DNA of 42,315 bases, taken from the NCBI GenBank assembly GCA_000708835.1, contig DF237659.1:1-42315 (forward strand). The letters run 5' to 3'. The position numbers and the translations under genes were made by a program. Numbering within the stretch: the stretch's first letter is position 1; every line of letters starts with the position of its first letter. This document shows positions 1,253 to 38,360 of the stretch, one piece after another. The notes under the pieces are model-generated. The model was not told the origin of the DNA. It did not search any database and worked only from the letters and a program-made list of their open reading frames with translations. The DNA comes from Klebsormidium nitens (lineage: Eukaryota > Plantae > Klebsormidiophyceae).

Positions 1253-4200
1253 ATGGCTCTATCCTATGCCAGGGGGGTGGGCACCCCCCTAAATCTGGGC
1301 CAAGTGGGGCCTTTGTTAGGCAGCAGATCGTGGATAGATCCTCCACGGCCCTTCTTGTATCCACCATATGTGGCAAGAAGGGGCTTTATGGGGCGAAGAG
1401 CAGGAGACCTTGCCGATCTGGTGTCTCCAAGGCCCGCCTGCCGGTGTGCGGGTTTAGAAAGCATGTTAGGAAAGGAGCAAAGGCGGAAAGAGGTGCACAG
1501 TGTGCGCCCGAGGGCGGGGAAGAGGCTGAGCGAGGGTCAAAGACAAGGGGGCGTGCAGGAGAAGGAAGGAGACGGAGAACAAAGACACAGTATACCCCTG
1601 TGGAAGTCCTTCTTAGGAGTGACGGCAGGTTTGGCCCTCTGCACCAGTCTGCATGTGGGCCAAGCACATGCGCTTGAGTTAGATCAACCAGGGGTTGTAA
1701 CAGAGACCTCACTAGCAACTCAAATAGGGGTTGCAACAGAGTCCTCACTAGCAACAGAGACTCTCTTAGAAAGGAGATCGAATGTGACAGACGACCCCCT
1801 AGACAGCGATGTCACACTCCCAAGTGCAGGCATGCCAGTCCAGTTCACGGTCGACAGTCCTGGGGGCACAGACGCTCCTGTTTCAGGGGAGGCTCCCAAC
1901 CCTGTCCTTGACATCAGCGTAGAGAGCAGGAAGTCTGACGGGTCAGAGGGCGCATCTGGAGAGAGGAAGAGGCGGACAAGCAACGGGATCGCGGCCGCCG
2001 CGGCCGCTGTGGCGGGGGTGTCTTTAGTCGCCTCTGGAGGGTCTACGGCTGCGGCGGCAGGCGCAACTTCTGCCGCTGTTGCAACAGCCGGGGGGGCTGC
2101 GGCAGGGGCGACTACAGGGGGGGCTTTGTTGGCGGCGTCCACTCTTCCTGTCTCTCATGCGGTGGCTACAGCAGCCACTACAGCAGCCACTCTTCACGCT
2201 GCGGAAGCAGTTGGAGCGACTGTGGCTGCTTCTGTCCTAGCAGGGGGAACTGCCGCGGCCTCTGGTGCCGCCGCGCCCGCGGTGATGTCAGCGGCAGTTG
2301 GAGCAGGGGCCGTTGCGGCGGGGACGACGTCAGCGGTTGTTGCGGCGGGGCTCGCCTCAGCGGCAGCAGGCTCCGCAGGGGCAGCGTCAGTGGCTACTGG
2401 GGCGACGTCAGCGGTTGCGGGAGCGACATCTGCGGCATTGGGGGCTGCATCAGCGGTTGCAGGGGCAACTCCAGCGGTGACAGCAGCAGTGGTTGGGGCG
2501 ACGTCAGCAGTGGCAGGGGCGACGTCAGCAGTCGCGGCGACGACCTCCGCGGTGACGTCAGCAGCAGCAGCAACGACCTCAGCGGTGACATCAGCAGCAG
2601 CCGCGACAACCTCAGCGGTGACGTCAGCAGCGGCGGGCGCAGCCGCGAGCACCGCAGTCCCCTCCTCGGCGATCCTCGCGACCTCGCTCCCCGCGGCAGT
2701 CGCCAGCAAGGCCGTCGTTGCTTCTTCAGCGGGTGCGGTTTCCAGCACCGTCGCTTCGACCATCCCCGCCGTCGTGGCAAAGTCGGGGGCAAGTGCGGCC
2801 GCCACCTCAGCGCTGACGTCAGCGGGCGCGGTGTGCACCACCCCCGTGAGGGCGGTTGCTCACGCTGCCACGTCAGCGGTTTTGGAAGGGGGGGCCGCTG
2901 CCGTTACTGCGGCAGAGAGCGTTGCGGTCGCGCATTCTGCTGCGGTGTTGACTCAGTCGGGGCTTGCGTCGGCGATCGCGAGCTCGGCGCATCATTTTGT
3001 GGAGGGTGGCGTGGCGGGCGCAGTGGGGGCGACTGTTGTGTGCCCAATTGGTGAGAAGTGACGTTGAAGGGCATTGCAGTATTGAGTGCGGTTCTGCTCG
3101 CAAAGCTATGCATCTGCTGTTTTGTCGTTTACTGAGATTGCTGGGGAAGTTGTATTGTCTAAGAAGTACGGAATGGAACAAGGTCTGGTCAATTGCATTG
3201 TAATCCATCTTTGCCTGTAGGCCAGTCAGAGCACGCTTACTTCTGGTCAAGATGGAAAGTACATCAACGTTCATACAAAGGACTTTGTGGCTTTGAATTC
3301 AATTACTAACCTCGTCTTTCCAATCTTGCAGACGTTGTCAAGACCCGTATGCAAGGCCAGGAGACCAAGAAGGGGGAAAAGCCTAAGTACGCCAACCCGG
3401 CCGACTGCGTGGTTCAGATACTGAAGGAGGAGGGGCCCGGCGCATTCTTCTTGGGCCTCATCCCTCAGGTAATGAACCCTCCAAATGCATGGGCCCTTTG
3501 GTCCCTTGTATGTAATGACGGTTCAGAAATCCTGGTCAGTTAGCCCTTTCAACCTTGTCAGTGGACTGGTTTGCGTCCTGTTTGCGTCCTGATGCTTGTT
3601 GCCATGACAATTTCTAGCATGGGCGTTACTGTCCTGTAAGATCCGACTTCCATATTTGTAAAAGAGTCACCATACTAGATTGTTACATATAGAAGGAAAA
3701 ACTCTTTGTTCTTTAGTTAAGATTTGACTCCTAAAGCACTCCCAAGCGTCATCCACAACCCCATGGCAAGTTCGACACATTGTTTTCTAAGTATAAGTTT
3801 TGCAAACCATCATCCTCAATCCCCTAAGACTCGTATCCCTTGCCCCGCAGCTGCTTGGCGTCGCCCCTGAGAAGGCCATGAAGCTGACGGTGAACGACTT
3901 GCTCATGAGCGTTCTGGAAAGCTACATCCCGGGGGCTCGCCTCTGGACGCTGGAGCTCTTTGCCGGCAGCGGAGGAGGCCTAGCTCAGGTCGTCTTCACA
4001 AACCCGGTGAGTGACTCCTATCGGATTGTCAGAGGACTTGTTTGGTTGGTCATTCTTGTTCTGCCGCCATTGCTTGATCGAAGAAAGGCGCGGCTTTATT
4101 TTGATTTGTCTATCAGAAACGTCCGTTTGCCTCAGTGTGCTTTTTCTGCCCGATCTGGACAAGTGATAGCTTCTTGAAAATCCTTCAGGGTACCACCCCT

Positions 4201-5504
4201 TTTCTAGCAGCATCCCGATTCACCTGTTCTTGATTCATGGTCTTACTGCCTTCTCTCCTTCCCTAACCGGAACTTGATCAGGATCAGTAACATATTAACC
4301 AACCAATGTTGATTTCCGGCTGATAACGTTTTTCTCTTCCCCTCAGATGGAGATGGTCAAGATCCGGCAGCAGATGCAAGGCCCCGCCGACGCTGGCCAC
4401 GCCAAGAAAACAGCTCTCGAGATCGCACGCGAGCTCGGCCCCGCCGGTTTATACCAGGGCAGCATCGCCACGCTGCTGCGCGAGATCCCGTCGTCCGCCA
4501 TTTTCTTCGGCTGCTACATCGTGTTGAAAGATTCTTTCCCGGATCAGCCGTTCATCGCCGGCTGCCTCGCGGCTGCGCCCGCGGCGTTCCTGTGCACGCC
4601 CATGGACGTCGTCAAGACTCGCATGCAGGTGAGAAGGTCTTAAGCTTTTTGGGATTTCGGTTGTGTTTCAGGTTGAGTAAGGGACGGAGTCTGGTTTTCA
4701 GGCTTTGGTTTTGGGCTGCGGTAAGGACAGAATTGTGCTTATTGGGCTCTTGTGCTGGGTTTGATACGGGAAAGATCGTGCTTTTGGCGGGTGAACATGC
4801 CAGATGCCCGGGTTGGCTAGTCCACGAGTTAGAATTTGAAATCATGATGGGTCCAATCGCCGGTTCAGGGCTTGACGTTGTGCTTTCTGTCCTTTTTTGT
4901 GTGGTAGCGATCCATGACGGTGGTACTTGCTCTTTTCTGAGCGTTTGCTGAGTGTCACAAACGCTCAGCAAAGCATCACTTCAAGGGGCACTCGATCTTC
5001 GAACAAACGCCCAGCAAATTGCATAAGTTCCGCTCTTGAAAGTTGCGATCTGTTTCCGTTGTGCAGATGGAGCGGAAGGAGGGCGAGGTGGTGCTCGGGT
5101 TCTGGGACACGACCCAAAAGATCATTCGGGAGGAGGGGCCAAAGGCCCTCTTCAACGGCGGGCTCACCCGCGTGCTCCGAGTTAGCCCCCAGTTCGGTGA
5201 GAATCTGTTTCTAGCAAGGCCTTCGGAATGCAGTTCAGCATACCCAAGCTCTCCTTTGATTGACGTTCTCACTTAAGTTGACTGATGCTTCTGTGTGTGA
5301 TAAAAAGCAGATTTTGGTGTTTGCTTTGCTCCTCACTTGGGGTGCAAGTGACTTCGGTCTCAGATTCTGTTTGTATTTGGATGCCAGGCGATGCCCTAAG
5401 TCGGTTGCTGTGTCAAGCACGCTCTCCCAGCATCTTACAGAGATCCGCTTTCATTTGCTGCAGGGATCACTCTGGCTGTGTACGAGCTTCTGAATCACTG
5501 GTAA
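1253..5504 (+). CDS. Mitochondrial carrier family (SLC25) protein, citrin/aralar (aspartate-glutamate carrier)-like, with long N-terminal extension; 6 exons, ~847 aa
   Basis: Exons 1253-3050, 3332-3468, 3851-4006, 4347-4628, 5067-5196 and 5464-5504 join in frame through GT-AG introns (2544 nt, ends TAA). Three carrier repeats carry the signatures PIDVVKTRMQ, PMEMVKIRQQ and PMDVVKTRMQ. PQLLGVAPEKAMKLTVND, LLREIPSSAIFF and RVLRVSPQFGITLAVYE match the AGC subfamily pattern as I recall it. Confidence 0.88.
2030..3000 (+). repeat. Ala/Thr/Ser/Gly low-complexity coding region with tandem peptide repeats (GATSAVA-like 7-mers; AVTSAAAATTS 11-mers x3)
   Basis: Visible in the translation of exon 1 of the carrier; recurrent gcgacgtcagcggt-like DNA units at about 2390-2640. 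Confidence 0.85.
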
Positions 5505-6661
5505 CACCAGCCGGTCTGCAATTGTTCAAGTCGACTCGACATGCTTTTGCGCAGAGTCAGGATAGAAATTGTTACATACTCGCAGGTAGATAGTGGGTTG
5601 ATATCATTCTTTCGGGGCCTCTAGAAAAGAGGTACATAGAAAAGTGGGCGGGGAAGTTGATTGGTTAGCAGCCTGTCATTTGTACAGTGGGTTTTCGTCA
5701 GACTGGTGTGTACAACAAGAGATTGAGACAATTTCGAGAAAGGCACAGAAGTTCTTGCCACAACGTAGTGCTGGATTAGGTTTCGACGAGTAGTTCAAGT
5801 TTGCATAGTCCGAATGAGAAAGTTGTTAGAAAGGCATTTTGTTCATAATCTTGGTCAGATTAAATATGCAACCTTGTCATTTGTGATCATTTGTTAACAG
5901 GTTGAAGGCAGTGCTTCTTGGGCGCTTCCCAAATCGGGCAGGAACCTGGCTGTTGATTGGACATCCCGTATTTGACTCGCTGCAAACCTGCAAGGCATCC
6001 TGAGCGATATATATAACATGTGCGCATCAACATATTTGTTTCATGGAATTAGGGTTGCTGGCCGCCATGTTTGATCCCCAGTCAGCCAGCTCGGAAGTCA
6101 CATGCCAGCGTAACGTTCAAAAACGTACTCAGCAACATTTGCCAGCATCTGGTATATGCTGGCACTTGGCATCTGGCATCCATGCGTTAAACCACCACCC
6201 GCGATTTATAATCGGGCAAATTTAAAATGCTGACGTGGCATAACTTGCCAACGGTCGTCGAGACCGTGAAATTCAAACTGCGACCATGGGGCGCACCATT
6301 CTGAACACTGATCGAAAAGGGCGCTCCCGCCTGCAACTGCGGCATCAAATCTCCACCAAACTTGGCGGTGTCAAGCTTGTTCGCCAGGAACAGGCCCCGC
6401 TGGGACGCGCTCCTTTTTCCAGCTTCAAAAACCACCAAAAATAAGGCCAGGAAGCACAATAACGATGCTCTTACCTTATAGACGCTATTTTAGCTCGTTT
6501 TGAGGGCTGAAAAGACTGGCGCTGTCTTTTGAGGCCTGCATGTGGCGACTAAGCTTGGCACCGCCAGCAAACGGCATGATCTTGGCAGTCTAGAAGGTGC
6601 TAGGGAGCCATTTCTGCATGGTGCCAAAAGCTTGCGCCCCATGAGAGAACTTGAACTTCTC

Positions 6662-7368
6662 NNNNNNNNNNNNNNNNNNNNNNNNNNNNNNNNNNNNNNN
6701 NNNNNNNNNNNNNNNNNNNNNNNNNNNNNNNNNNNNNNNNNNNNNNNNNNNNNNNNNNNNNNNNNNNNNNNNNNNNNNNNNNNNNNNNNNNNNNNNNNNN
6801 NNNNNNNNNNNNNNNNNNNNNNNNNNNNNNNNNNNNNNNNNNNNNNNNNNNNNNNNNNNNNNNNNNNNNNNNNNNNNNNNNNNNNNNNNNNNNNNNNNNN
6901 NNNNNNNNNNNNNNNNNNNNNNNNNNNNNNNNNNNNNNNNNNNNNNNNNNNNNNNNNNNNNNNNNNNNNNNNNNNNNNNNNNNNNNNNNNNNNNNNNNNN
7001 NNNNNNNNNNNNNNNNNNNNNNNNNNNNNNNNNNNNNNNNNNNNNNNNNNNNNNNNNNNNNNNNNNNNNNNNNNNNNNNNNNNNNNNNNNNNNNNNNNNN
7101 NNNNNNNNNNNNNNNNNNNNNNNNNNNNNNNNNNNNNNNNNNNNNNNNNNNNNNNNNNNNNNNNNNNNNNNNNNNNNNNNNNNNNNNNNNNNNNNNNNNN
7201 NNNNNNNNNNNNNNNNNNNNNNNNNNNNNNNNNNNNNNNNNNNNNNNNNNNNNNNNNNNNNNNNNNNNNNNNNNNNNNNNNNNNNNNNNNNNNNNNNNNN
7301 NNNNNNNNNNNNNNNNNNNNNNNNNNNNNNNNNNNNNNNNNNNNNNNNNNNNNNNNNNNNNNNNNNNA
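6662..7368. other. Assembly gap (707 N) flanked by an exact 55-nt direct duplication
   Basis: 6607-6661 is identical to 7369-7423. Confidence 0.95.
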
Positions 7369-7407
7369 GCCATTTCTGCATGGTGCCAAAAGCTTGCGCC
7401 CCATGAG

Positions 7408-7436
7408 AGAACTTGAACTTCTCAAGTTCAAGTTCT
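7408..7436. repeat. Perfect 13-bp-stem hairpin (agaacttgaactt-ctc-aagttcaagttct)
   Basis: Reverse-complement arms read directly from the sequence. Confidence 0.9.
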
Positions 7437-8175
7437 GAGGAGCGCCGGCATCCCGGCGGCATTTATAGGTTGGGGGTGGTGGTTTAAGGCGGCTCTAAGA
7501 TTGATCCTCAACATCTACATAAGATCGAATATAGCTGCATACACAGTCACATAATATGAGATGCCGCATGATGACCTTGCTCATGGCGGCTGTACACCTA
7601 TACTTACCCCATGTGCGCCCAACTCCTGCACCCGCGGCCCAAAATCATGAAGCATATACGCTTTCAACATCTACCGTCATGTTCAAAATAGCCAGCCAAT
7701 CAGAAGTATACCTACATGTAAGATGTATGACCTGTAGTGTATACCGTCTTCGCGCAGAATTAGAAAGCAACATCCAAAAGTTCGAAATACGTATAGATTG
7801 CATCACGCCTCTCATTTTTCAAAGTGTGCACATGTAATCAGGGTGAGGACCGAGGAAGCATGCAATTTCCTCCGTTCAAGACTGCTCGTTCAATGATTTC
7901 ATTTCACAACCGACCGTTTTACCGGTACGGGTACAAGTTCAATTGAGGGCAATGTAAGTGTGGAGCTGACGATATGCACAGGCCAGCAGATCCATCACGA
8001 CGACCATCTTTGAACGCAGCAACCCCCATCTGGTCAGAGCTAGGCTAAGCTAAACTGCTTCGGACTGAGCTCCCGAAACCCATATCAACAGCAACCTACT
8101 AGCTAGTCCAAAGCAGAGAAAGGAAACCAGCCCCACGTGTCCAAGCTTCCGCGTCTAGCATCCCGTTTTTCCGCT

Positions 8176-11100
8176 CTACTTCGCTGCGTACCAATTCTTG
8201 GCGTGCTTCGCATCGACCGCCAACGCCACTTTCAGAATGTTCTCGCCATCGAATGGATGCGCCATGGCATGAACCACACGGCTCAAGGCCTCGTCCGCGC
8301 TCTCCTCCGGCCCTTCCAGGATCATCTCGTCGTGCACTTGCAGCAAAAGCCGCCACCCTAGTTCCGCCAGCCGGGCGTCGCGGGACAGCTCCAGCATGGC
8401 CAGCATCGCCACGTCAGCAGCGCTCCCCTGTGAGCACGCGAAAGAGGTCAGAAAAGCCGAAATAAGAACGCGGCTGCGTTGCAGAATCTGCCGCCTTTTA
8501 CCCTTTTCAAAGAATGCTCTTCGCAAACTGAAAAGTGACCAAGACTTTCTCCCTCTTCGGCAATTGAAAGCCTTTCCCCTACTAAACTGCCTGAACCAGG
8601 CAGTCGCCTGGTCTATCGAACCGATTACCACAGCTTCTGCGCGAGTTCATCCCCTTCTACCGAGAACGAAATACAAGATCCGGACATCCTCGCTCTTTTT
8701 GACACCTTTTTCTACTGCGCTCTGCATCCCAGCTGCTTTCCAAATGAGTCTCGGCGACCGCCCTACCTGCACGGGGGTGTTGATGGCTGCCCGCTCCATG
8801 TGGCTCTCCAGCAGCCGGTTCCTGCTGTTGATGTCGGGCAAGCGCCGCCGCCGCCCGAGCAGCGTCGGGACGTACCCCGTCTTCTTGGCCTCCTCGATGC
8901 GCGCCTTCTGCCACCGCTTCACCTCCTGCCGCGCCGCGTACCACAGCTTCACCGTCTCCTGCGCCTCCTCCAACGTCACCTGGAGAGACACGACACTTGG
9001 ATGACGTCATGACTGCGTTGATGTGAACTCATGGGGAGGTTTAAGTAGAGGAAAGAGATTCAACCTTCACCTCCTGGGCACGCCGCGTACCACAGGTTCA
9101 CCGTCTTCTCTGCGGCTCCTCCAGCGTCATTTCGAGGGTTTGGCACTCGGATGACGTCACGGTTACGTCAAAATGAATGTCGTGGGGAGGTTCCAAACGA
9201 GTACAAGAGTTCAAACAAAACCTGCTCTCATGGCGGACCGCAGATTTACCTCTGTCCTGCGCCTCCTATTACGTCACTCACCGACTGAAGTTTGTGTTTT
9301 CAACACAAACAGGATTGATTGAATCATGGAGAGGACTGAAGCTACGCTTCATAGTGCAACCAAGTAGGGTCGGGCAAGAATCACGCTCACGACGTCCTGA
9401 CCTGGCTTGCGACAAGCTCTCATTGTCTAACTTAAAATCTGAGACCTGGAAGGAACTTCCAATGCCACGAGCACGCCGCCAACCTCGACCCAAGAGCCAA
9501 CCCTCTGCTGACGTCACGAAAGAGACCGGCCACCCAAGAGCCAAACCCTGCTGACTTCATGGACAAATCCCACCACAACCCGCCCACCTTCCAGTCCTTG
9601 CTCAGCCCCGCCGCCGTTTTCCCATACGCGATGGAGAAGTTGAGCATCTTGGCCTTGCGGCGCTCCGCCCCGAAGACGTCCTTGAGCATCGGCGCGGGCG
9701 CGGGAACGGTGCCGTCTTTTGAGTCCCACTCGAGGAGGACCTCGCCGCGCTCTACGGCTTCCCGGACGTGCGCGTACATGTTGACGGCTGTGCGCGAGTG
9801 GAAGTCGCCACCCGCCTCGAAAGCGTCTTTCATGCTCTGGCAGTCGGCCAGGTGGGCGAGCAGGCGTAGCTCCAACTGGGGGTGAGAGGGGGGGTTCAGT
9901 ATCGTGGGGGAGGGGGGGTGACAGGATAGCGGGATAACTATTGAATGGACACGGACAATATTCCGTCGCTTCCAACGCGTTTTCCATTCTCTGGCAGGTG
10001 GCAATTTGCGCAGAATGAGAGTAGGGGGGTCAGACTGAAAATAGCATGGGGGGGTAACATCAAACAGAGTTCGGGTTGACATCCGAGTGGAGACAGAAAA
10101 GTTAATCCGCTGAGTGACCCAAACAAGAGTCTGTGACCTCCGGCGCCACCGACTAGTAGTGGGCCAGCTTTGCGAGTCGCTGCAACCTCAAGTGGGGCCG
10201 AGAGGGGACGGTCCGACTGCAAGCAAGCAGTTCTTCTGCAGGAACTTGTAACAGCCGACTTGAAAACTCCTGAGTTGACTAGTTCCTCGAACTCTAGAGC
10301 AACCTACTTCAAACGGAGGAATATACACAAACTAATCGGTGGGCCTTACCTGACCATAATCAGCCACGATGAGCGTGTTGCCTGGGGATGCCACAAAGGC
10401 CTGTCGAATCTTGTAGCGGTCTTTCTCGAGGGCGGGCTGGTTCTGCAGGCGGAAAGGGAAATGGCTACAGATGTACTCGTATCGAAACCCGACAAGCAAC
10501 GACAAAAGTTGGAGATAATGAGGCAATCAAAATCAGTTGTTTCGCCAAACATTCCTTTGATCGGCTAGGTGAGATAAATTCCAAAAGGAAGTGTGTACCA
10601 GCTTGGGTGCAACGTAAGCTGGAACTGCATCAAAGAAGGAAAGCAAGTAATCAACCTATCAAACTAGTCTGGACAGACGACATTGATGCAGCGGATTGGG
10701 CCAGAAGAACAAAACCACAACAAAAGTTTTAACATCTTGCCTGCAGGTTGGGCTTCCTGGCGCTGAGCCGGCCCGTCTCGGTGTTGATGTTGAGCGAGCA
10801 GTGCACCCGCTTGTCCGGACCCAGCATCTGGTCTCCTTGGAGCGGCTGAATGAACCCCGACAGCAGCGTGCTAATCGCGGAAACTTCGATCAGCGCCGCG
10901 ATTGCGTGGCACGCTGCCTTGCCTTGAACGCCCCCTCCGAAGGCGGCGTATGCGGTGCCGTACTTGGAGACGTCGTCCTTTGGAGCGTCCTGCAGACAGC
11001 GGGGCAATTAACATAACCATACCGTCTAATGGTGATAGATCTACGGAACTGAAAGCACTGAAAATCGTTGACTGACCAACCTAAAACCCTAAGGACAAAA

Positions 11101-14100: not shown

Positions 14101-17100
14101 TGTTAGCGACTCGAGTGAGTAGCCCGCGCCGGCCTTTTTATCGCGGGCGGAATCGTAGAGGCGCGCCATGTGCATGGTGTCCGCGTGGAGGCCCCGCGCG
14201 TCGACGCCGTGGTTGTGGAGGATGTGGCGGTCGAAGCTGTAGTTGTGCCACACCTGGGGGAGAGCGAAAAAAATGCTTGTGGGACGTCTGACGCCTCTGC
14301 TGAACGGACGTGGTAGACGGGAAGTTCGACGGGAAGGAGAGCGAAGGAGATCTCCGAAAGCGAACGACGCTTATGATGAAGCCGGAAGTGAAGGAATTTC
14401 ATTGTGCGTATTCAAATTAGGAAAAGGCTCTGGAACGTACAAATCGATGCCGATCACTTGCTGGCCTCGCATTCGGCGTCAATTGCGAAAAATTTGCTAT
14501 TTGGGAGGCGGTACTGGCGCTTTACCATTTCCTGCATCTATTGCTGTAATTCCATATTCCAAAAGGAGTGAAGGGCTAAAAGTCAAATGTAAGGGGAGAA
14601 ACTTATTCCGCATCTCCCTGCTTCTTTTATCTACCGTCGTGATAGATAGTTGGCACAAACTGACAAAAAAACCGAGTCCAGAACCGCAAAAAGACTCCTG
14701 AAATGTTGAAGCAGAAACTTTTCCTCACAGAAGGCACATTCCCCAGGATCTGACGATATGAAAGCTTCGACTCCTTGAATAGCAACAGATTGGAGCAGTA
14801 CATCGGGTGCATTTCTCAGATCCAACGTGTAGCCCACCTTCTTGATGGTCGGATCTTCAAAGAAGCTCTTGAACGGCGCCAGCAGCTCCTGTCCCCCCCC
14901 CAGCAGGTCCACGAACACGCAACTATTCCCGGCCCCCCAGTCGACGTCCGGCCCCGCATAGAACGTGAAGCACGTCATCATGCCATGACCCACGGGGCTC
15001 TCCTTCTTGACGTCAATCTCCATCACCTCCGTGTCGCACGCAAACACGCGCGCGCGGTGTGACGTCAGCGCCAGCTCAGCAACCCGCTCCGCCTCGGCGA
15101 GGTCGCTCACCAGAAGGACCGCCTCGTCCCGCGCCGCGAGCGCCGCGGCGACCGCCGCTTTGGCTTCGGCTTCCGTCGGGACGGGAAGCGGTTCCGGAGG
15201 CGGAGCGTCTGGCTCCGACTTCAGGGCAGCCTTCGCGCGCGGCTTGCGCATTGCGGGGGCTCTCCGCGGTCCTGACCCCGTCTTCTCGGACCCCGTCTTG
15301 GAGAGTCGTTCGCCGAAGACCGTGCTGCTCCGCAGGAGAGGCGACATGCTTTGCGCCGGGGTCAGGGTCTGCGCAAACGGCGCAGAGGACCCGTTTCCGG
15401 GAGTCCGTGGCTGTGCACTGAGACCACCTCCGAGAGTGTGAAGGTCCGCCGCTGCTTCGATTGGCTGAGAATTTACCCCTAGAGGAACGTCCGCCACCGC
15501 GAACCCGGCATCTGAAGCACGCTCAGGGGGGTGGAGAGCGCCGGTGCCATTTCCGAGTACTCCAACAAACTGCAATTGGACCTCCAGACCCCCCTCTGCG
15601 GTCAGCACCTCGCCCACCGGCAGCCCAGGAACCCCCTGCTGTCCCAACAGCCTAGTGCTGTCGACCCTTTCTCCTTCCTCTGGCTGCAGTCTGCCCTCCT
15701 GGATCCGCCCCGCAGCCGGCATCTGCCCACTTGACACTGCTCCCACAACCGGCTTAACAGCCTCCTCGGCTGGCTTCGAAACCCTGGCCGTCTTCCTACC
15801 CACCCCTCTAGTTCTCGTTGCGGCCCCGAGACCGTCTCCTGGTGTCAAAGCCTCCGCCGCTTCCCCCTCCGCAATCTCAACCGTCGCCTCTGGCGTGGAC
15901 GTCGCCCGCCAACTCCTTGTCGGCCGCTTCTGCGACACGGTGGCGCCAGCCCCGCTTGCAGACCCCAAGGCCTTCGTCTCTCCATTCTTTTCCTCCTCAG
16001 CAAACCGCAACCCTTTAGGCCGGTTCACTTTGGGCTTCTCTTTGACAATGCCCCTGTCTTTGCCTCCAAGCTCTCCATTTGCAGTGCTGGTCTCCGGGGC
16101 GATCGGTTCACCTGGCCCGTCCTGTGCCAAGACAGCATCCTGCACCTTTGGATCCCTGGCCGCTGGGACTTTAGGTGATACGGGAGAAACAGCCTTCGCA
16201 GCCCCTGCTTTTACCCTAGCTCCATTGGTCAGGGCAGCGTCCCCAGGACTCTCTGCTTCCAAACCTTTCGCTTCCACTTTGACAGCAGACTCGACACCTG
16301 CACCCTCTACCTCCGTGGCCAGAGTTTTACTGCGCCGTGGCTTTCTTGGCTTAAACGGCGGTCTCTTCTTCCCTTCGTCGCAAACGGCGCTTCGCTTTGG
16401 CTCCAAATGAGTCTCCGCTTCCCCACCCCAAGCTTCAACCAAAGTGGCCCCTTGAGGGGGGCCCTGCACTGCGCTGCTTGAGACCTCCTTGTTTGCCTCA
16501 GGAATGGGGCTCAAAGGTACGTTTGGAGGTCCATGCATGGGGCGACTTTCAGCGGACTGCTCACGTTGACGAGCAATCTGCGGCGAGTTGCGCGCTCTGT
16601 GCGCCTGTTCCTCCACAAATTCCTCCTCAAGGAGCTTCGAGCTAGCATCAGTTCGCTGCAAGGAAGCCCAGAGCTTCAAGTTCTCGGGCGACTCGTATGT
16701 TGCTCCAGGTATAACCCTCCCAAACTCGGTATGGGCACCGGTTTGCACCGCTGGATTGATGGCTATTTTCACGCTTCCTGGAGGCCTCGCCTTTTGCCAG
16801 GGCTCCTGATCCCTGTCCCAATCGCCTCCCCCCCTCCAGTATGACGCCCGTTCTGTAATAGGCTGGGCTTCCTGCAAGCATGGCTTGCTGCTGGAGGGGC
16901 GGAAGGCGGGCAGGCTCCGATTGGCGCTCCCAGCAGTGCCGGGGAGTGTCTGAGCAGGGGAAGAACCCAGAGCCAGGGGGCCCCACAGCAGGGAGACACT
17001 CTGGACGAGAAGAGAGCTGCAGAAAGAAAGTGGAAGCAGGGTCATGCATCTTCAAAACCTCCTACGCTGTGCACAGGATTTCCTGCTCGCAACAAACATA

Positions 17101-30095: not shown

Positions 30096-33000
30096 CTAAA
30101 CGTTCACAGTCTGATTGTTGTCACCGAAAGTCATGTCCCTGAACAGAGGCGGCGCGATAATCGTTTTCTGCACCTTGCTCGTAGACGCCCCGAAGATGTC
30201 GCTGAAGAGAACGCGGTCGCCCATGGCCAGCGCGGTCAGCGCGGTCGCGCGGCAGCCGGCTGCGCGGTAAACGAGCTGGTAGCCAGCAACTCTCTGCCCG
30301 CGGGTGATTGCGCTCTTCTTGTCCACCATTTTCTGGATGACGTCAGCCGCCTGCATACCAGGTATTGATAAGCACTCTTGGCATGTCATTCAAAAAGCTG
30401 CGTCGTTAACTTGAGCTGGATCGGCGGGCGTCCTACCGAAATGCAGGAAGCCGGATGCAGAGATGACTGACTGTGACCTCTGATGAGAGTCTCCTCACGA
30501 AGGCATTGAAGCAAGCGTTCTCAGACCAGCCACAAAGATTGGTATCAACCGTCTGCAAAGTTTGTCATCAGCGCAATCAACAGAAACCTATCAAAAACTT
30601 CAGGTTGCGAAAGATCCGGACGAAAGTAGATAGGTTTTGGCGCCTCTCAACCGAAATGACGTGATACGTTTGATGGAACGGGAAAGTAGGGCGTGACCGA
30701 AAGCAGCATATGAGTTTCTGTACACCAAAGTCAGCAAACGGCAGAGACTCTTGGAGGTCAAAAAGCAAGGTCCTCAATTAAAAGAAACCAAAAAAGCCGC
30801 TCGGCGTTCGCCCACCTGAGAGTCGGCAGCGGCCGCGACTGCCTCTGTCTTCGCCTGTTGCACCAAGTCGGTGGTAGCTTTGCCATCTAGGTCTCGCGTC
30901 GAGTTCAGCACACTCTGAGCGGCAGCCTGGAAAGCACCCTGGGCGGCGCCGATAGCCAACGGGGTAACCGTCTGGAGTTTGAAAGAGAGCCCAGTTCAGA
31001 AAGGGATTGAGGTGCATAGTCGTGGTCTTGAGCGAGTCGAAAAAGGCGGTCAAGGTTTGCTAACGTTTTCCCCGCAGAAAGAAGAAGACAGCGTGTTGAG
31101 GCTTCCTGGTTCAAAGCCGAGACAACAGCCAATCCCTATTGTTTCTGGGGCATGAACCCTCTTTCAAGAAGCTTATTCTAAGGGCAGCAAAGCTCACACG
31201 AAGCGAGCGAAGGCGCCAAAGCCTGTGGGCAAGCAGTACACTGCAAGATCTACCTTGAGTATTTGCGAAGCCCTTACCATACACGATCTGACCGGGAGAA
31301 GACTGTATAATTCAGTGTCGAAAACTCACCTTCAGCATGTCGGAGAAGAAGCCTCGCTTGTCACCGACCGGCACTTTGCCGGCGCTCAGTGCGACAGACG
31401 GACTTGTGGGTTTGGCGACGTTCACCAGCGCGTCAAACAGGCCGATGTCGCCGGCACCAAGCGCGACGACAGCCGCAGCGTCAAGTCCGTTCTGTCCGTT
31501 GGAGGCGAGTACGGACTTGTACAGAGAAACCTTGTCCACCGCTGTTGCCCCGCTGAACAGGTCGCTGACCTTGGACTTTGTCTGCACCGAAAGCAACGAA
31601 AAAGAGTTAGTTTTGAGAAGAGTCGCTTCCTTGAAGGAAGGCTTCGCAATTGATATCTTCCAGTAAACGTTCGTCCTTGGATCAGTCGGTCCATACTAGT
31701 CACGTGCCGTATTCTTTCGGCATTTGTTTGAAAAGATACTTTTGTAGCTCTTGGAAACGCATGCCTTCCTTCCAATAAGGCCTCCTCATTGAAGAGAGCC
31801 TCGAGTGTTTGAAACACGAACAGACGGAGTGAAGAGATTGTTGGTGGAATCAGCTTTGAACCGCAGAGTCTTCACGAACTAGAGAGGGCGCAAGAAGACC
31901 GCTCAACAGGCCACCCACCTGCTCGTCTTTCACCATTGATAGGGCCACCTGGCGGGCTCCCTGTGTCGCTTCATCTCCCAGGGATCGCTCTCCAAGCGCC
32001 TTCACGTAGTCGCTGACGTGTGAGGTGCCAAGAGTGACGCCGTTGAGGATGTTCTCAAGCGCGGCCGCGCCTGGCCCGCCTAAGACGGCGGTCAGCTGGT
32101 CGCGCGCGGCGGGTTCAAGGTCGCGCGACATGCCGGACAGGGCGCCGTTCATTGCTCCCAAGAGCGCTCCCTTTCCCACGCTCAGGAGGCTGTCGAACAA
32201 GCCCCGGTTGTTGGCCGCGAGGGCTGTGAGAGCGGTGACTGAGGGGCCTGCCCGCGCGTAGAGAGCGCAGTAGGCGGCTGTGTCGTTGGCGCCGGTGGAG
32301 ATCAGGTCGGTTGCCGCTTTGACCGCCTGCAAGCGGAGGTTTGAGGTTTACGGTTTGAGGTTCGAGGAGGTTCAAGTAGAGAGGCGGAGGGGGTTTTGCG
32401 CTGCTCCGCATCCTCCACTAAGAAGAGTCCTGCGGCCGGCTACGCGCTCGAGATGAGATGGCTGTCTGATGGCATTAGGGCGGCCCGTCGACGGCTCGGC
32501 ATGACCAAAATAGAGAGCGGTGAATCAATCTTTCACACACCCTTTCAAGACGACGATGGCGGTGGCACGAGGATCAACTTCAGTGAGGGCTGCGCTTGAG
32601 CAGTGAGGGCTGCGCTTGAGCAATCTGCTTGCTATTGCTGTCTATCACTTCAGTTTCGGTAGGGACGAGCGTGCGGGCGTTTCGACAACGAAACTTTCGT
32701 AGCTAACAGGGGCGGAAGCGGAGGGTTCGGATTCAACAGGGGAACAAAAGTAAAGACATCTACTTTTGTCAAAGTGGCTTACCTGGCTGTCGGTAACTGT
32801 CTTCCGGATGACGTCAAGGGCATGCATCTTGAGGTCGTCGCTGCTCAGCTGGCTGCGCTTCGAGCTCAACAACGCGAGGGCAGTGTTGAGGACCGGCTCC
32901 TCCTGGCGCCGGCTGCCTGCGACCGGTAGGTCACGGCTGAGCGCGCTGTTGACCGCGCCGTTGACCGCGCCAATCGCAATCGGCTTCAGGAAGTCGAAGA

Positions 33001-35487
33001 CGTCACCAAAAAGGCTGCGGTCCATTCCGTCGACAACGAGAGCGCGGGCTGGGCCGCCAATTGCGGCTGTGAGAGCAATGTTGGCGACAGGGACGAGGAT
33101 GCTGAGCACGCTGTCAAAGAAGCCGCGGTCGCCGGCCGCAAGCGCGGTCAAGGCCGCGACCTTGGGACCCGCAGTGTCGACTATAGTGTGGTACAGCTGG
33201 GTGCGCCGGGGCGCCCCCATAAGGAGCGAGTTGTCGACCAGCTGCTGGACGGTGTCGGAGGCCTGAAAGGGTTGAAAAAGGCGATGGAGCGGGCGTGCAA
33301 GAATTGGAGTGATGCCTGAGGAGTACCTCACTTGGTTTGTGCTTGCTAGCGAAGTCAATGCTTACCTACGTTCATTCCAAAAAAGTAACTGAAAGGAGGA
33401 CTTACAAGGAATGAGCCCTTGCATTTGCAAAGCCAAAGCAATGCAAGCCACCAAGCTAATATACACAAGTCGGCTGAGCTGAAGTTGGCCCCCAACTACT
33501 ACCGTCTAATCTACTCGGGCCGCACTTTCCGGTAGGTGACTTGGGTGCAGCTTTTTGCATGAGAACACAGGCAAAATTCTTGTTATACCATGCCCAACTG
33601 GCAGAAGGAAGATAGACTCACCCCGGGCGTGTCGCCAGCCACCTTCTGCACTACTCGCAGCGCCTGCGCGCGCACAGCTGGATCGCCCAGGTCGCGCGCC
33701 CCGAAGGTGGAGATGGCGTTGGTCAGGAGCCCGTCGTACAAGCCGTTGCCGGTATGCGCACTCAGGTCCCGAGAGGCGAAAAGGCTCAGACCCGCCCCCA
33801 CAATGTCCCCGAAGAGATCACGGTTGTAGGGATCGTCGGTAGACAGGTCGCGGCCGCCAAATGCACCATTGACAGCTCCCTGCAAACAGATCTTCGTCTA
33901 TCGATGCTTCTCCCGGGGATGATTGGATGATGATTCTGTCAGAGAAATCGAAGCTGGTACCACGTATGTGGGCACCAGTTCACGAGAAGCTGGCATAATC
34001 TGCTCAGCAATGATGAGCAGAGAAGTCATGTCCTGTTGAAGAACACAGTGAGCTGCTTTCATCAGAACAACCAACTTTCGTTGATTACTTCGTTCATTTG
34101 TTGATCGTACGTGCCAAGCCAAGCCGTTGGTTCCAAGCGGAAATATTGGGCACAGCAGATTTCCATCACTCTCAATTCCTTAATTCCCTTCAACTTACGG
34201 AGAGAGCGGCTAGGCCGATGTTCTTCAGAGAGTCGAAAAGCCCGCGGTCGCCCGCCGCCAGCGCGACGAGCGCGGCCGCCTTGGGTCCCGCACGATTGTA
34301 AACGAGCTTGTAGCCGCGACGCTTGGCATCGTAGGAAAGGGTGCCTCCCGCAGGGTTGGCGAGCTGCTGTGCCGCTGAAATCACCTGACGTGACAAGAAG
34401 ATGGACAAGTCTAAGGGACACTCTCACAGATCCACTCAGGGAAGTGAACAAGTGAAGGATACTGCAAATGTTGCCCTTCGCGAGTAATCTGCCGCAACCA
34501 TCATTTATGCACCTGAAAGCCAACGTGGATGGGCTTGCAAAGTGCTGAAAAGGACAGTACATAGTCAGAGACAATGACGGAGCGTAATGCTTAGAAGTAT
34601 TGGACCTTGATCTCTTGACATTATTGACACTTGCCAAGAGCCTACTGCGTTCGGACATTCGGCTCAAAAGTATCCTACTTCAGCAACAGCGGCTAAGAAG
34701 GATGAGGTTTTCCTTTGAATCACTTGCGCTCAAACCTCCACTTTTTGCAACTGTAAGTTTGCAACAGGCCTGAGTAGAAATAGGTACCCAAGTCATCGTC
34801 CTAACGACAAAAATTGCACTAGCAAATGCTTTGTTGAAAGAAGTTTTCATGCTTGGTTGTGATTGTCACAACACTCACCTCAGGATCGGCGACGAAGTTC
34901 TGAACAATGGCAAGGGCCTGCTCTTTGACTCCCGTTTTAGGACCAGCCATATCGCGAGTCGCCGCATCCAAAATCTGGATTGCCGTTCCCAGAAGACCGT
35001 CAAAGAGGCCGCGCGGCCGCCCGCCGCCACCCACCACGCTTCGAATTCCGATGGCACCTTGGAGCGCACCAGCGGCCATGCCGGCCGCGCCTGAGCCCAC
35101 ACCTCCGAGGGCGCCCTGGAGCGCGCCAGCGGCCATTGGCTTGACCGTGCTCCAGAGGTCGTCGAAGAAGCCACGCTCGTCTGCCGGCATGCGCGTGAGC
35201 GCGCCCAGCGCGTCATTGATGACGTCAGCAAGTCCGCTCTGGACGTCCGCCGCCAAGCCCGATGGAACAAGGGGATCAGCGACCCAGACGGCAGCAGAAC
35301 GGAGTTGGGTGTGCTCAGGGAGAAGCGTAAGGGCGTCGTCGAAGAGCGCGCAGTCGCCGGCAGCAAGCGCGGTAAGTGCGGTGACGGTGGGACCGGCCAG
35401 GGTGTTGAGGGCCTGATACTCAGCCGCCTTCTGGGCGGAGTGAAGGTTTCCCACGGAACTGGCAAGGGCGCTCACGGCGGACTTCAC
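30096..35487 (-). repeat. Six protein repeat modules (Y..L...AGP....L.ALAAGDRG[L/F]FD core followed by R-delimited Gly/Ala-rich amphipathic segments)
   Basis: Cores: LAGPTVTALTALAAGDCALFDD, RAGPKAAALVALAAGDRGLFDS, TAGPKVAALTALAAGDRGFFDS, RAGPSVTALTALAANNRGLFDS, GLDAAAVVALGAGDIGLFDA, AAGCRATALTALAMGDRVLFSD. Confidence 0.85.
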
Positions 35488-38360
35488 CTGTGCGGTGGAG
35501 TGAAGACGGGTCAACACGTCATCTGGTGGCATTAAGGAGTGCCCGGCAAAGCGCGCGTGTACAAATGTAGACCTTTTACTCCTTGAGGTCAAAACTTCAA
35601 AAAACACTCAGGACAGCACGCCCCCGAAATGATCATACTGCTCAAGTACGTGTTTAAAGCTTTGAAAGAGGCGAACAAGAGCGGCTGACAAACTTTGTGG
35701 CCGAATGCATTGGCACGCGATTTGGAGGCGCCTGCATAGCTCCTGAAATCATGAGAGTCTTACCTTCTGAGTCACGGTGTGTTGGTGATTTGCGCCAGCG
35801 CCCACTTCTTGTTCACAGCAGACTCCAAATCACCGGTCGCAGGAAGGCCAGGCAACTTCAAGAGAAGGCTTGTCAGACGCCCCAGGCCCGGCGGTGGCAC
35901 CGCCATATCCCGTGTCTTTGATGGTGTAAAGGGAGCCAGGAAGGGAGTCTGCACCCGGTCGCTCATGCAGTTCACGTTCGGGATTTGAGGCCGGCCGTTG
36001 GCTTGGAGGTCAGCCAGGATAAGCTTCTTCAAGCCCGCAATCCCGAGGGTCCTGGCTTTAGGGGCCTCTCCGTAAAGGAAGTAGCTGAAGGCGCCGTAGG
36101 CGTTGAACTCCTGTGCAGGCTCCTCAAAGCGGCAGGCCGAGAGCACAGTCGGGGAATCCTGCAGTGGAGAGCGACCGGGATTGTCGCTTGATTGTAATTC
36201 TGTCACAGATGATTAATCCTTTGTGCTTAGCACGATTGAGTAGGAAAACGACCAAGTTAGCCAGGTGAAAAGCTAGCCACTCGTTCACAACCAACCAACC
36301 GTGCGTGTTGCCTGCAGTCACTTCGTGCACATCTTTCTAAACCTTAATCAGGCGGCCCAAATCCATAACCTTAATTACCTGATTGCTGGAAGTCACGGTG
36401 AAAAGGTTGCTGATAGTCGGGGCTGCAGTGGGTGCGAGGTCTCGGGCAGCGCTGTGGGCCTTCATTGCCCCGTGTTCGATGAAAGGGTTGGGGTTGGGAA
36501 GGTATCGAATCACGGGTGCAGAGACCTGGGTGCTGGGCAGGTCACGGGTGGCTGCAAAAGTGCGGACAGAGTCTTCATGTTGACACAACCGCAACGGTGC
36601 TTACTAAGTTGGATGCAATTACAGGTTAGCCTCAAGGGCATTGTCGAAACAGCACATGGGCAAAGGTCCAACTGCACAAAGAAGTCCTTCTCAAAAGACT
36701 ACAGCGTACATATCTTCTCGTCAATTGGAAGTTGCTTTTGCTAACTAATCCAACAAGCGACACGGGCAACATGCTCAGACTATGCTAGCGTCGCTTGTAG
36801 TGCTACCTAGCTTTCATCACACATTCTCAGGACGCAACCGACGTGGAGTCTCCACCCTAGCTCAAACTCTGAGGTCATTAAGGAGGACTTGCGGCACCCA
36901 CCTTTTGCGCCAGAGTGGCAGCAGTCCAGGATGAGGTACACGCTGACGCCCTTGGACAGGCTATCAAAAGCTCCCTTGAATTCGGTGTCCAACAAGCAGT
37001 TGTTGAAGACACCGGTCTTGCTGTCAATCTCGATGTCTGAAGGAACCAGGATGGCAGTCTTGTCGCTCACAAGGGGTTACTGCAAAAGACATCAATTTAC
37101 GCTGTTTCGAAGTCGTTCGGAACGTTGATACAAGGGGTAACAACGACCTACTCTCCGAGACACATGGCCAGCTTCAAAGCAAGCATGCTACGAGATTGTC
37201 TGAACTCTTTGTGCGCTGTACACAAACAAAGTCAAGGTCTTCATTTACATGGAAGAATCGACCAATACATGTGGCTGCACATGGCTGTTGTGGCCCCTTC
37301 TGACTTACATGCCTAAAAGTGTCTATCTATTGGAGAGTCAAAAATGGTGAACACACCCTGGCAAACAAAGGGCAACCAACGAGGCAAATAGCACGAGACT
37401 GGCGTGAAAAGGGCCGGAGATAGAGCCGGCATCAGTCTGACGATGAGAACCGGTTCCTATAACCAAGCAGCAAACGATTATTGAAGGGGCCCATGATCAC
37501 CTGAGCCCCATGGCCACTGTAATGAAACACGAGCAAGTCCCCGGCCTTTGCCCCGGTGACCAATCTTTCAGGGCCTTCAAGATGTTGGTCTTCGTTGGCA
37601 GGGTGTCCTTGGAGTACAGCGTGGACTGGGGGTCGTCAACCAACGTCTGCAGACAATCAACCACTTGCTTTTAGTCATTCTGGAACCTGCCAGTGCCTTT
37701 CAGTTACGCAAAGTTATCAGGAAGGGCAACAACACACAATCTTCCATTTCCTAGCCTTACTGAGTAGGTGAGCGCACTGCCGCGACAGCTGGACGCAAGT
37801 CAGAATTCTCTAGATTAAGAAGTGGCCCTGCTTGTTTGAATAGGACAAGGGGAGGACAAGCTGCCAGCTAATAATATGCTCATGTGTTGAGAAACTGAAC
37901 ATCTGCAAACCACATCACTGCAAATGAGGTTGCTTTTATTCACGAGCCCTTGTATTCTCAGCTCAGCACAATTCTTCTTCTGAAGCGATCATTAAAAGAC
38001 CCCGGATTCAACGGTCCGCAAAAGCATCCTACGTCTTGACTGATCATGGAGAACGCAACTTAGCTTATAATCAGATTCAACCTGACGTGATATGATTCAA
38101 GGATTACCCTTTTGCATTAGTCTCCTCTAAGTTTAAATGAGAAATTTCAGCAAGAAAGGGAAGCCCATGTAGCTTACCTTGATGTTACTGGTGTCGAAGC
38201 CGTATGATTGCACGAGTGTAGTCTTGGCAAGGACAACGTCGTTCACGCAGCCGCTCAGTGGGGGCACATTTGCCGTGCCCTGGTAGTTGCAGCCCACGAG
38301 GAGAGCCGCCTTCTTCATCCCGGGAAGGGCATTGGGGGGAGCAATCGAGGAATTAGCCAT
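30096..38360 (-). CDS. Metacaspase (peptidase C14) fused to a long C-terminal repeat polyprotein; 13 exons, ~1225 aa if three frame lesions are repaired (possible pseudogene)
   Basis: Exons on the minus strand: 38360-38178, 37646-37501, 37079-36902, 36551-36379, 36158-35764, 35487-34879, 34384-34199, 33879-33622, 33262-32783, 32326-31919, 31581-31330, 30971-30816, 30350-30096. Motifs: KKAALLVGCNY..LSGCVND, PTKTNILKAL, FHYSGHG (His), ILDCCHSG (Cys), and p10 VLSACRFEE..GAFSYFL. The tail exons are all phase 0 and repeat AGP....L.ALAAGDRGLFD. The 3' end is uncertain. Confidence 0.75.
32581..32622. repeat. Perfect 20-nt tandem duplication in an intron
   Basis: cagtgagggctgcgcttgag x2. Confidence 0.9.
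35900..38360 (-). other. Caspase-fold (metacaspase) p20 + p10 domain
   Basis: His-Cys dyad motifs HYSGHG and DCCHSG are present; no N-terminal signal peptide or prodomain is visible. Confidence 0.88.

Follow-up and report, generated by a model that had tools for sequence, protein, structure and literature searches.

A metacaspase gene of the alga Klebsormidium nitens with a tandem-repeat tail that may be an arginine-cut multi-peptide precursor

The metacaspase gene KFL_007100040 and its repeat tail

The window considered here is an entire 42,315-base-pair (bp) scaffold (contig DF237659.1) of the streptophyte alga Klebsormidium nitens, which displays eukaryotic gene structure with introns of ~300 bp. 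One of its genes, KFL_007100040, is the subject of this work. It spans positions 30099-38360 of the (-) strand, as do all the features of the gene given below, and is divided into 13 exons; the deposited protein, GAQ90987.1 (P0001; 1157 amino acids, aa), agrees with it in every exon, with 0 mismatches. The polypeptide begins with a metacaspase domain and continues into an 866-aa tail of repeats, in which homologous helix-forming units stand mostly behind an arginine. A preliminary description of the scaffold, made from the sequence alone, had picked out eight Arg-bracketed segments of this tail and likened them to membrane-active peptides. All eight are present on the (-) strand at 30.9-35.2 kb and are identical to GAQ90987.1; each has an Arg directly in front and an Arg at its end, and six lie within single exons. 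The other two require a phase-0 splice across a GT..AG intron: GLFDSLKN.. at 34199|33879 and GFFSDMLK.. at 31330|30971. The range assigned to the segments runs from the Gly1 codon of the first Arg-bracketed unit (35172-35170) to the last base of tail exon 7 (30816); tail exon 8, with the degenerate module 6, falls outside it.

The tail comprises five full modules, ~30% identical to one another, and one degenerate module; Ala (17.7%), Leu (12.3%) and Gly (10.9%) are abundant in it. Exon borders coincide with module borders for every module, with modules 2 and 5 carrying an extra internal intron. All tail introns are of the GT..AG type and in phase 0, and the eight tail exons are all open, in phase 0, across the 866 codons. 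The exons were derived first from open reading frames (ORFs) and splice signals alone, and this derivation agrees with the deposited model; they were searched singly, and the spliced sequence used later is the deposited protein returned by the search. The plan of a module is as follows: a helical lead segment ending in ..ALTALAAGDR is succeeded by one to three helix-forming units of 17-44 residues and then by a trailer helix, and the short spacers between units start with D-L after an Arg.

Module 1 corresponds to tail exon 1 (34879-35487). It accommodates a degenerate unit, ALFDD.. (35349-35299), with Cys in front, the Gly/Ala-rich unit GFFDDLWS.. of 44 aa (35172-35041) and the unit GLFDGLLG.. 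(35010-34954). Module 2, encoded by tail exons 2 and 3 (33622-34384), contains several R|DL spacers together with the unit GLFDSLKN.. (34243-33850), which crosses the intron at 34198-33880, and the unit DLFGDIVG.. (33819-33769). Tail exon 4 (32783-33262) is module 3, with the units GFFDSVLS.. (33124-33044) and SLFGDVFD.. (33016-32933). The intron between tail exons 4 and 5 harbours a 20-bp perfect tandem duplication (2.1 copies, 32581-32622). Module 4, on tail exon 5 (31919-32326), has the unit GLFDSLLS.. (32203-32123). Tail exons 6 and 7 (30816-31581) form module 5, in which the unit GLFDALVN.. (31443-31354), with Ile in front rather than Arg, stands before the unit GFFSDMLK.. (31353-30894), the latter crossing the intron at 31329-30972. 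Finally, tail exon 8 (30350-30099) is the degenerate module 6, with the unit VLFSDIFG.. (30212-30138) and a final R|DM.

The metacaspase part is encoded by exons 1-5 (38360-38178, 37646-37503, 37064-36903, 36552-36379 and 36158-35955). P0001 matches the Pfam family Peptidase_C14 with an expectation (E) value of 1.8e-12 (47.9 bits, cut-off 21.4), and exon 1 alone does so with E 7.7e-5. The K. nitens metacaspase has no prodomain, and the splice into the tail coincides exactly with the end of its p10 part. Exon 3 encodes the catalytic Cys motif, DCCHSG, in frame, and exon 5 encodes the p10 motif GAFSYF. The catalytic His motif (..VFHYSGHG..; 21 codons, 37501-37563) is out of frame with both flanks. 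This piece alone matches positions 65-83 of the Peptidase_C14 profile (E 0.017), and its frame overlaps the upstream coding frame by a single nucleotide at 37563; the deposited protein lacks the motif because the deposited model reads the stretch in another frame. The exon-3 acceptor (37065) is an atypical GAG, the other acceptors checked being CAG (10 of 12 introns examined). Inspection of the sequence revealed no splice pattern that restores both flanks of the His motif, as neither a phase-compatible CAG acceptor nor a good donor was found. The frame break may be an assembly error or a real loss.

Metacaspases are Arg/Lys-specific proteases, and the linker between p20 and p10 is the region in which they cut themselves. 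In KFL_007100040 this linker exon (36379-36552) encodes two R-D-L motifs, ATRDL and AARDL (Arg codons 36546-36544 and 36444-36442), and these are the only R-D-L motifs outside the tail.

Arginine boundaries and the character of the units

Eleven homologous units of the form G-[LF]-F-[DS] are found in the K. nitens tail, nine of them with an Arg directly in front. The boundary is mostly a single Arg, and a dibasic site of the Kex2/furin type is not the rule. With in silico cutting after Arg, nearly all of the resulting fragments have G[LFI]F, D[LIF] or S[LF] at their N-terminus. Motif counts were set against 3000-5000 shuffles: R-[GDS]-[LIFM] occurs 17 times in the tail, versus 2.02±1.38 expected (5000 shuffles, maximum 9), although such counts are not independent events because the repeats share ancestry. 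The motif persists despite the divergence of the modules to 30% identity. A Pfam search with seven tail exon ORFs returned no match, PROPEP, a family of plant peptide precursors, included.

A unit profile was constructed from 25 units of three proteins, 11 from K. nitens and seven each from P0004 and P0002, the relatives described below, aligned at the first residue. Position 1 is Gly in 21 of the 25, position 2 is Leu, Phe or Ile in 25/25, position 3 is Phe in 24/25 and position 4 is Asp, Ser or Gly in 25/25. Further along, Pro is present at position 11 or 12 in 17 units, and Ala is dominant at positions 17 and 21. The spectrum of column hydrophobicity across the units peaks at 90-95 degrees, which is what a helix hydrophobic on one face would be expected to give.

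The preliminary description had gone further and proposed amphipathic, membrane-active or antimicrobial peptides. While the Arg-delimited cassette stands, this part of the interpretation is weakened. Hydrophobic moments indicate moderate amphipathicity, and whole-peptide moments are mostly not above those of shuffles. Taken over the first 18 residues, unit moments span 0.20-0.51; windows in the enzyme domains average 0.22, with their 95th percentile at 0.42, and only about one third of the units reach that percentile. Over the first 13 residues they span 0.24-0.65, compared with values of 0.77 and 0.61 for the frog peptides aurein 1.2 and citropin 1.1, respectively (sequences taken from PMC5602100). 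The net charge of the K. nitens units ranges from -2 to +2, which bears out an early caveat about low charge, and their HeliQuest-type lipid-binding score is mostly <0.68. Glycine zippers, which had also been singled out, are enriched in the K. nitens tail (GAxxGA, 7 versus 0.3±0.6 in shuffles; GxxxG, 20 versus 9.6±2.7) but show no enrichment in the relatives. Judged on these sequence properties, the case for a lytic or antimicrobial role of the K. nitens peptides appears weaker.

The suggested likeness to frog peptides was examined with aurein 1.2 and citropin 1.1. A GLFD start directly after a basic cut site is shared, but the resemblance ends there, since past residue 4 both frog peptides fit the unit profile poorly (z 1.7 and 0.6, respectively). 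Homology to the frog peptides is rejected, the likeness being confined to GLFD. A polytopic membrane protein is unlikely: the Kyte-Doolittle 19-residue maximum (KD19) is >=1.6 in only one of the 25 units, GFFDSVLS.. of module 3 (KD19 1.96), the sole unit at transmembrane-level hydropathy. Judged by the position of the fold, there is no signal peptide, as the caspase fold begins as early as residue 17 (P0001) or residue 10 (P0004), and no hydrophobic leader is present.

Structure prediction had been put forward as a check on whether the segments are buried in a stable globular fold. AlphaFold2 was run on module 3 with seven module pieces as alignment, which is shallow. In the resulting model helices start or stop at Arg residues. 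The predicted local distance difference test score (pLDDT) of the unit region is <50, therefore the units are not buried in a confident fold; the lead segment, by comparison, is modelled with confidence. Prediction of the full 1157 aa without an alignment gave a mean pLDDT of 37.7 and is uninformative, except that the tail is all-helical. A Foldseek search of the module-3 model against the PDB yielded no match at E <=0.001.

Relatives of the cassette and the remainder of the scaffold

The module profile was scored against 1.84 billion representative proteins and matched only four, P0001 itself, P0002, P0003 and P0004, none of which is a PROPEP. One other lineage carries the cassette, in two RNA-seq runs (Logan ERR4329566 and ERR4329573). 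P0004 (703 aa) is an intact metacaspase, with FYSGHG and DCCHS in frame, and P0005 is a near-identical variant of it. The P0004 cassette is contained in one uninterrupted ORF and consists of one lead segment, seven units and a trailer. In P0002 (1012 aa; L002, ERR4329566) the cassette stands behind a nucleotidyltransferase domain of the PolyA_pol type; since it is thus found on a second kind of enzyme, it behaves as a portable module. The tails of P0002 and P0004 are colinear and 53% identical, and runs of GDRDIG-type mini-repeats stand before the cassettes of both.

The arginine boundary is maintained in this lineage. Arg directly precedes 14/14 units of P0004 and P0002, and the R-[GDS]-[LIFM] motif is found 17, 16 and 15 times in the three tails, versus 1.2-2.0 expected (~1.3 for the relatives). 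The P0004 protease carries the motif in its linker, as AFRDF right after DCCHS, and the N-terminal segment of P0002 has a single instance, GHARRGLGD, beside the GDRDIG run. Between P0004 and P0002, 14 of the 15 motif Args are kept, compared with 4-5 of 11 other Args, and identity amounts to 65% in the units and 55% in the spacers. With homologous Arg-delimited units on a metacaspase gene, a motif that marks the protease linker as well and a distant relative that keeps the architecture, the cassette reading of the preliminary description is upheld.

Charge distinguishes the relatives from the alga. Their units sum to net charges of +16 and +18 and the intervening stretches to -8 and -11, an alternation that, in sequence terms, is the pattern of cationic peptides with acidic propieces. 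Thirteen of their 14 units carry +1 to +5 and have a HeliQuest-type score of 0.75-1.58; the exception is the P0004 unit GLLDVLAG.., with a charge of -1 and a score of -0.03. The top local match between the K. nitens protein and P0004 is the stretch of the unit GFFSDMLK.. (13/23 identical). As one K. nitens module corresponds to the entire tail of P0004 or P0002, whole modules have been copied in the alga through duplication of exons.

The third-codon-position guanine-plus-cytosine (GC) content of the relatives is 44-54%, versus 75% in K. nitens, and no NCBI source was found for them; for these two reasons K. nitens is not their source, and a sequenced fungus or host is probably not their source either. 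The run numbers ERR4329566 and ERR4329573 adjoin those of transcriptomes of the blackleg fungus Plenodomus lingam (ERR4329547-58; PMC13462568). The remaining match, P0003 (XP_041347696.1), is a secreted protein of the snail Gigantopelta aegis that matches the module profile with E 4.7e-6. It contains four near-identical repeats starting NFFDDLL after a dibasic site, and gives ApoA-II/apolipoprotein Pfam matches; its likeness to the cassette is probably that of a convergent amphipathic repeat. Other searches added nothing to the family. The best score for module 3 in the ESM Atlas was 0.77, below the useful level, a word-based protein search with module 3, the P0004 tail and the P0001 tail returned only known proteins, and two pattern scans of metagenome contigs of the Joint Genome Institute detected no relative.

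Within the window, a tblastn search with the three tails identified no extra copy outside KFL_007100040. Elsewhere on the scaffold, an AT-rich island at 6001-8000 has a GC content of 30-33%, versus ~52% elsewhere, with long overlapping ORFs on both strands; no tandem repeats were found in it. A 216-aa ORF at 9432-10082 on the (-) strand matches family-A DNA polymerase (PF00476, E 2.3e-13, profile positions 161-203) and is probably a single exon of a larger gene. Two long ORFs of 66-69% GC, at 1253-3061 (+) with 602 aa and at 14631-17045 (-) with 804 aa, are without a Pfam match.

Candidate processing of the tail and its meaning

In the reading favoured here, the tail would be a multi-copy precursor from which a metacaspase, cutting after Arg, frees peptides that act on membranes or as damage signals, a proposition that we regard as evenly balanced between being right and being wrong. 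What the sequences show directly is the gene structure with its repeats, the enrichment of the motif and its occurrence in the linker, conservation in a second lineage, the charge pattern and the protease context, along with helices as predicted. We infer the cutting, its trigger by Ca2+ or damage and the action of the peptides from sequence and from analogy. The cutter would be an Arg/Lys-specific metacaspase, the fused domain acting on its own molecule or on neighbouring ones; should that domain be broken in K. nitens, another metacaspase of the alga would cut in trans. By analogy with plant metacaspase 4, the trigger could be a rise in Ca2+ upon damage or stress. Cleavage by the protease would begin at R|DL in its own linker and go on to the tail, and the products would be hydrophobic to moderately amphipathic helical peptides with a new N-terminal Gly, which might bind or disturb membranes or serve as damage signals.

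Several known systems resemble this arrangement in part. Metacaspase 4 (MC4), a Ca2+-dependent enzyme that cuts after Arg or Lys, cleaves several sites in its own linker and then sets Pep1 free from PROPEP1 by cutting behind Arg69 (PMC7206013). Both cases feature an Arg/Lys-specific metacaspase whose linker has basic sites for self-cutting, predicted in the alga, and a precursor without a signal peptide in which Arg occupies the P1 position of the actual or predicted release site. However, the algal protease and precursor form one polypeptide, with ~11 units rather than one, and the algal tail has no sequence similarity to PROPEP, Pfam being blank; its predicted products are hydrophobic helices and not of the basic Pep type. 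Candida Ece1, the source of candidalysin, the fungal repeat proteins processed by Kex2 and the frog skin precursors are secreted multi-copy precursors cut at basic sites. Tandem homologous units bounded by basic residues, helical and membrane-seeking (predicted) products and, in P0004 and P0002, acidic spacers alternating with cationic units are features in common with these. The algal tail differs in the absence of a signal peptide, in having mostly single Arg instead of Lys-Arg, and in a protease that is presumed to be cytosolic and is fused, and no homology was found. The cassette would work like both the MC4-PROPEP pair and the multi-copy precursors, and is a member of neither group.

Two further comparisons are looser. 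The fusion peptide of influenza HA2 (GLFG..) is exposed by a cut of HA0 after Arg, and its activity requires the free N-terminus (PMC5855800). Like the algal units it has an Arg before G-L-F, is Gly/Ala-rich and nearly uncharged, and is kinked near residue 12. Positions 5-23 of HA2 score z 2.8 against the unit profile over their own shuffles, although the absolute score is negative and below that of most true units. HA2 differs in being part of a viral membrane glycoprotein and in not being freed as a peptide, and the likeness is one of analogy, not kinship. In gasdermins, a caspase-family protease removes a restraint from the membrane-damaging part of the molecule. A similar activation logic in the alga would be speculative, as many short helices take the place of one pore-forming domain and neither gasdermin fold nor homology is present.

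A number of observations weigh against an Arg-cut precursor. Two K. nitens units have Cys or Ile in place of the Arg. Moderate amphipathicity and the near-neutral charge of the K. nitens units count against it too. Within the K. nitens modules, conservation is highest in the lead segment and not in the units; in the module-3 model this segment reaches a pLDDT of ~85 and packs, together with the first turn of the unit helix, into a small bundle of helices. An i/i+4 salt bridge between the Arg at position 0 and the Asp at position 4 is conceivable, and the conserved Arg may therefore be structural. Because the fused domain does not carry its His motif in frame in this assembly, cutting in cis may be impossible in K. 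nitens. Moreover, the family is known from two lineages only, and tests of covariation and selection are consequently weak.

Some of these points lend themselves to a different explanation, which we consider a real possibility, albeit short of probable: the tail would stay uncut and, as a repeat domain made entirely of helices, anchor or regulate the protease, for example by attaching reversibly to a membrane or lipid droplet or by contacting other proteins, the R-G-L-F-D and R-D-L motifs being helix caps or salt bridges. The conserved, confidently modelled lead segment and the potential Arg0-Asp4 bridge fit this proposal, as do the almost wholly helical prediction for the tail, the apolipoprotein-type matches of the snail protein P0003 and the equivalence of one K. 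nitens module to the whole tail of the relatives (lead, units and trailer), as for a folding unit. A membrane-localised algal metacaspase is also known (PMC10896300). However, an uncleaved domain leaves unexplained the occurrence of the same motif in the protease linkers, exactly where metacaspases cut themselves, a boundary Arg that is never Lys and is kept in 14 of 15 cases while other Args drift, and the combination of cationic units with acidic spacers. Low pLDDT in the unit region and the lack of a Foldseek match for the module-3 model speak against such a fold as well.

Alternatively, the K. nitens copy may be protease-dead or decaying, with the peptide segments functionless in this alga today and left over from a system that works only in the other lineage. 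This is improbable in our estimation, and is compatible with the other readings. The one-base frame overlap at 37563, a deposited model without the His motif, the GAG acceptor of exon 3, the absence of Arg before units 1 and 9 and the degeneracy of module 6 would all be accounted for. On the other hand, the eight tail exons have kept an open frame across 866 codons, joined in phase 0 by GT..AG introns. The broken frame may stem from the assembly, cleavage in trans could come from the alga's other metacaspases, and P0002 has the cassette without a fused protease. A tail serving as a pseudo-substrate buffer, whose many cut sites occupy the active site and delay or limit other cleavage, with the peptides as waste, is very improbable: linker and tail do share the motif, very short GDRDIG-type repeat runs precede the cassette in P0002 and P0004 and the metacaspase 4 linker blocks the active site until it is cut (PMC7206013), but a buffer has no need for a conserved 22-residue unit profile with a mid-helix Pro or for cationic units, and the cassette is also attached to a nucleotidyltransferase.

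The precursor reading may be pushed further, to a self-contained damage or death cartridge in which a Ca2+-activated metacaspase would cut its tail into ~10 membrane-inserting peptides with a new N-terminal Gly like that of viral fusion peptides, which would permeabilize the cell's own membranes, by a logic akin to that of gasdermins, or signal damage; the fusion would then be a 'Rosetta stone' for the MC4-PROPEP pairing, which land plants encode in separate genes, and the cassette would be portable. In this full form the idea is unlikely, if attractive. A search of the literature found no paper that mentions this locus tag or accession and none that joins a metacaspase to a tandem peptide cassette, and absence there is not proof.

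Few natural substrates are known for metacaspases, the relatives of caspases found in plants, algae, fungi and protists; understood best is the case of the Arabidopsis danger peptide, which is released from a separate precursor. Should the tail prove to be an uncut domain, it would still represent an orphan helical repeat of very narrow distribution and of modest importance. If it is indeed an Arg-cut precursor, KFL_007100040 would provide a ready-made protease-substrate pair in a close algal relative of land plants, with the preferred cut site indicated as R|G-[LF]-F and R|D-[LI], and the gene could show the origin of protease-released peptides in the green lineage. Among the peptides of the second lineage, which are more cationic, new membrane-active peptides may reasonably be sought.

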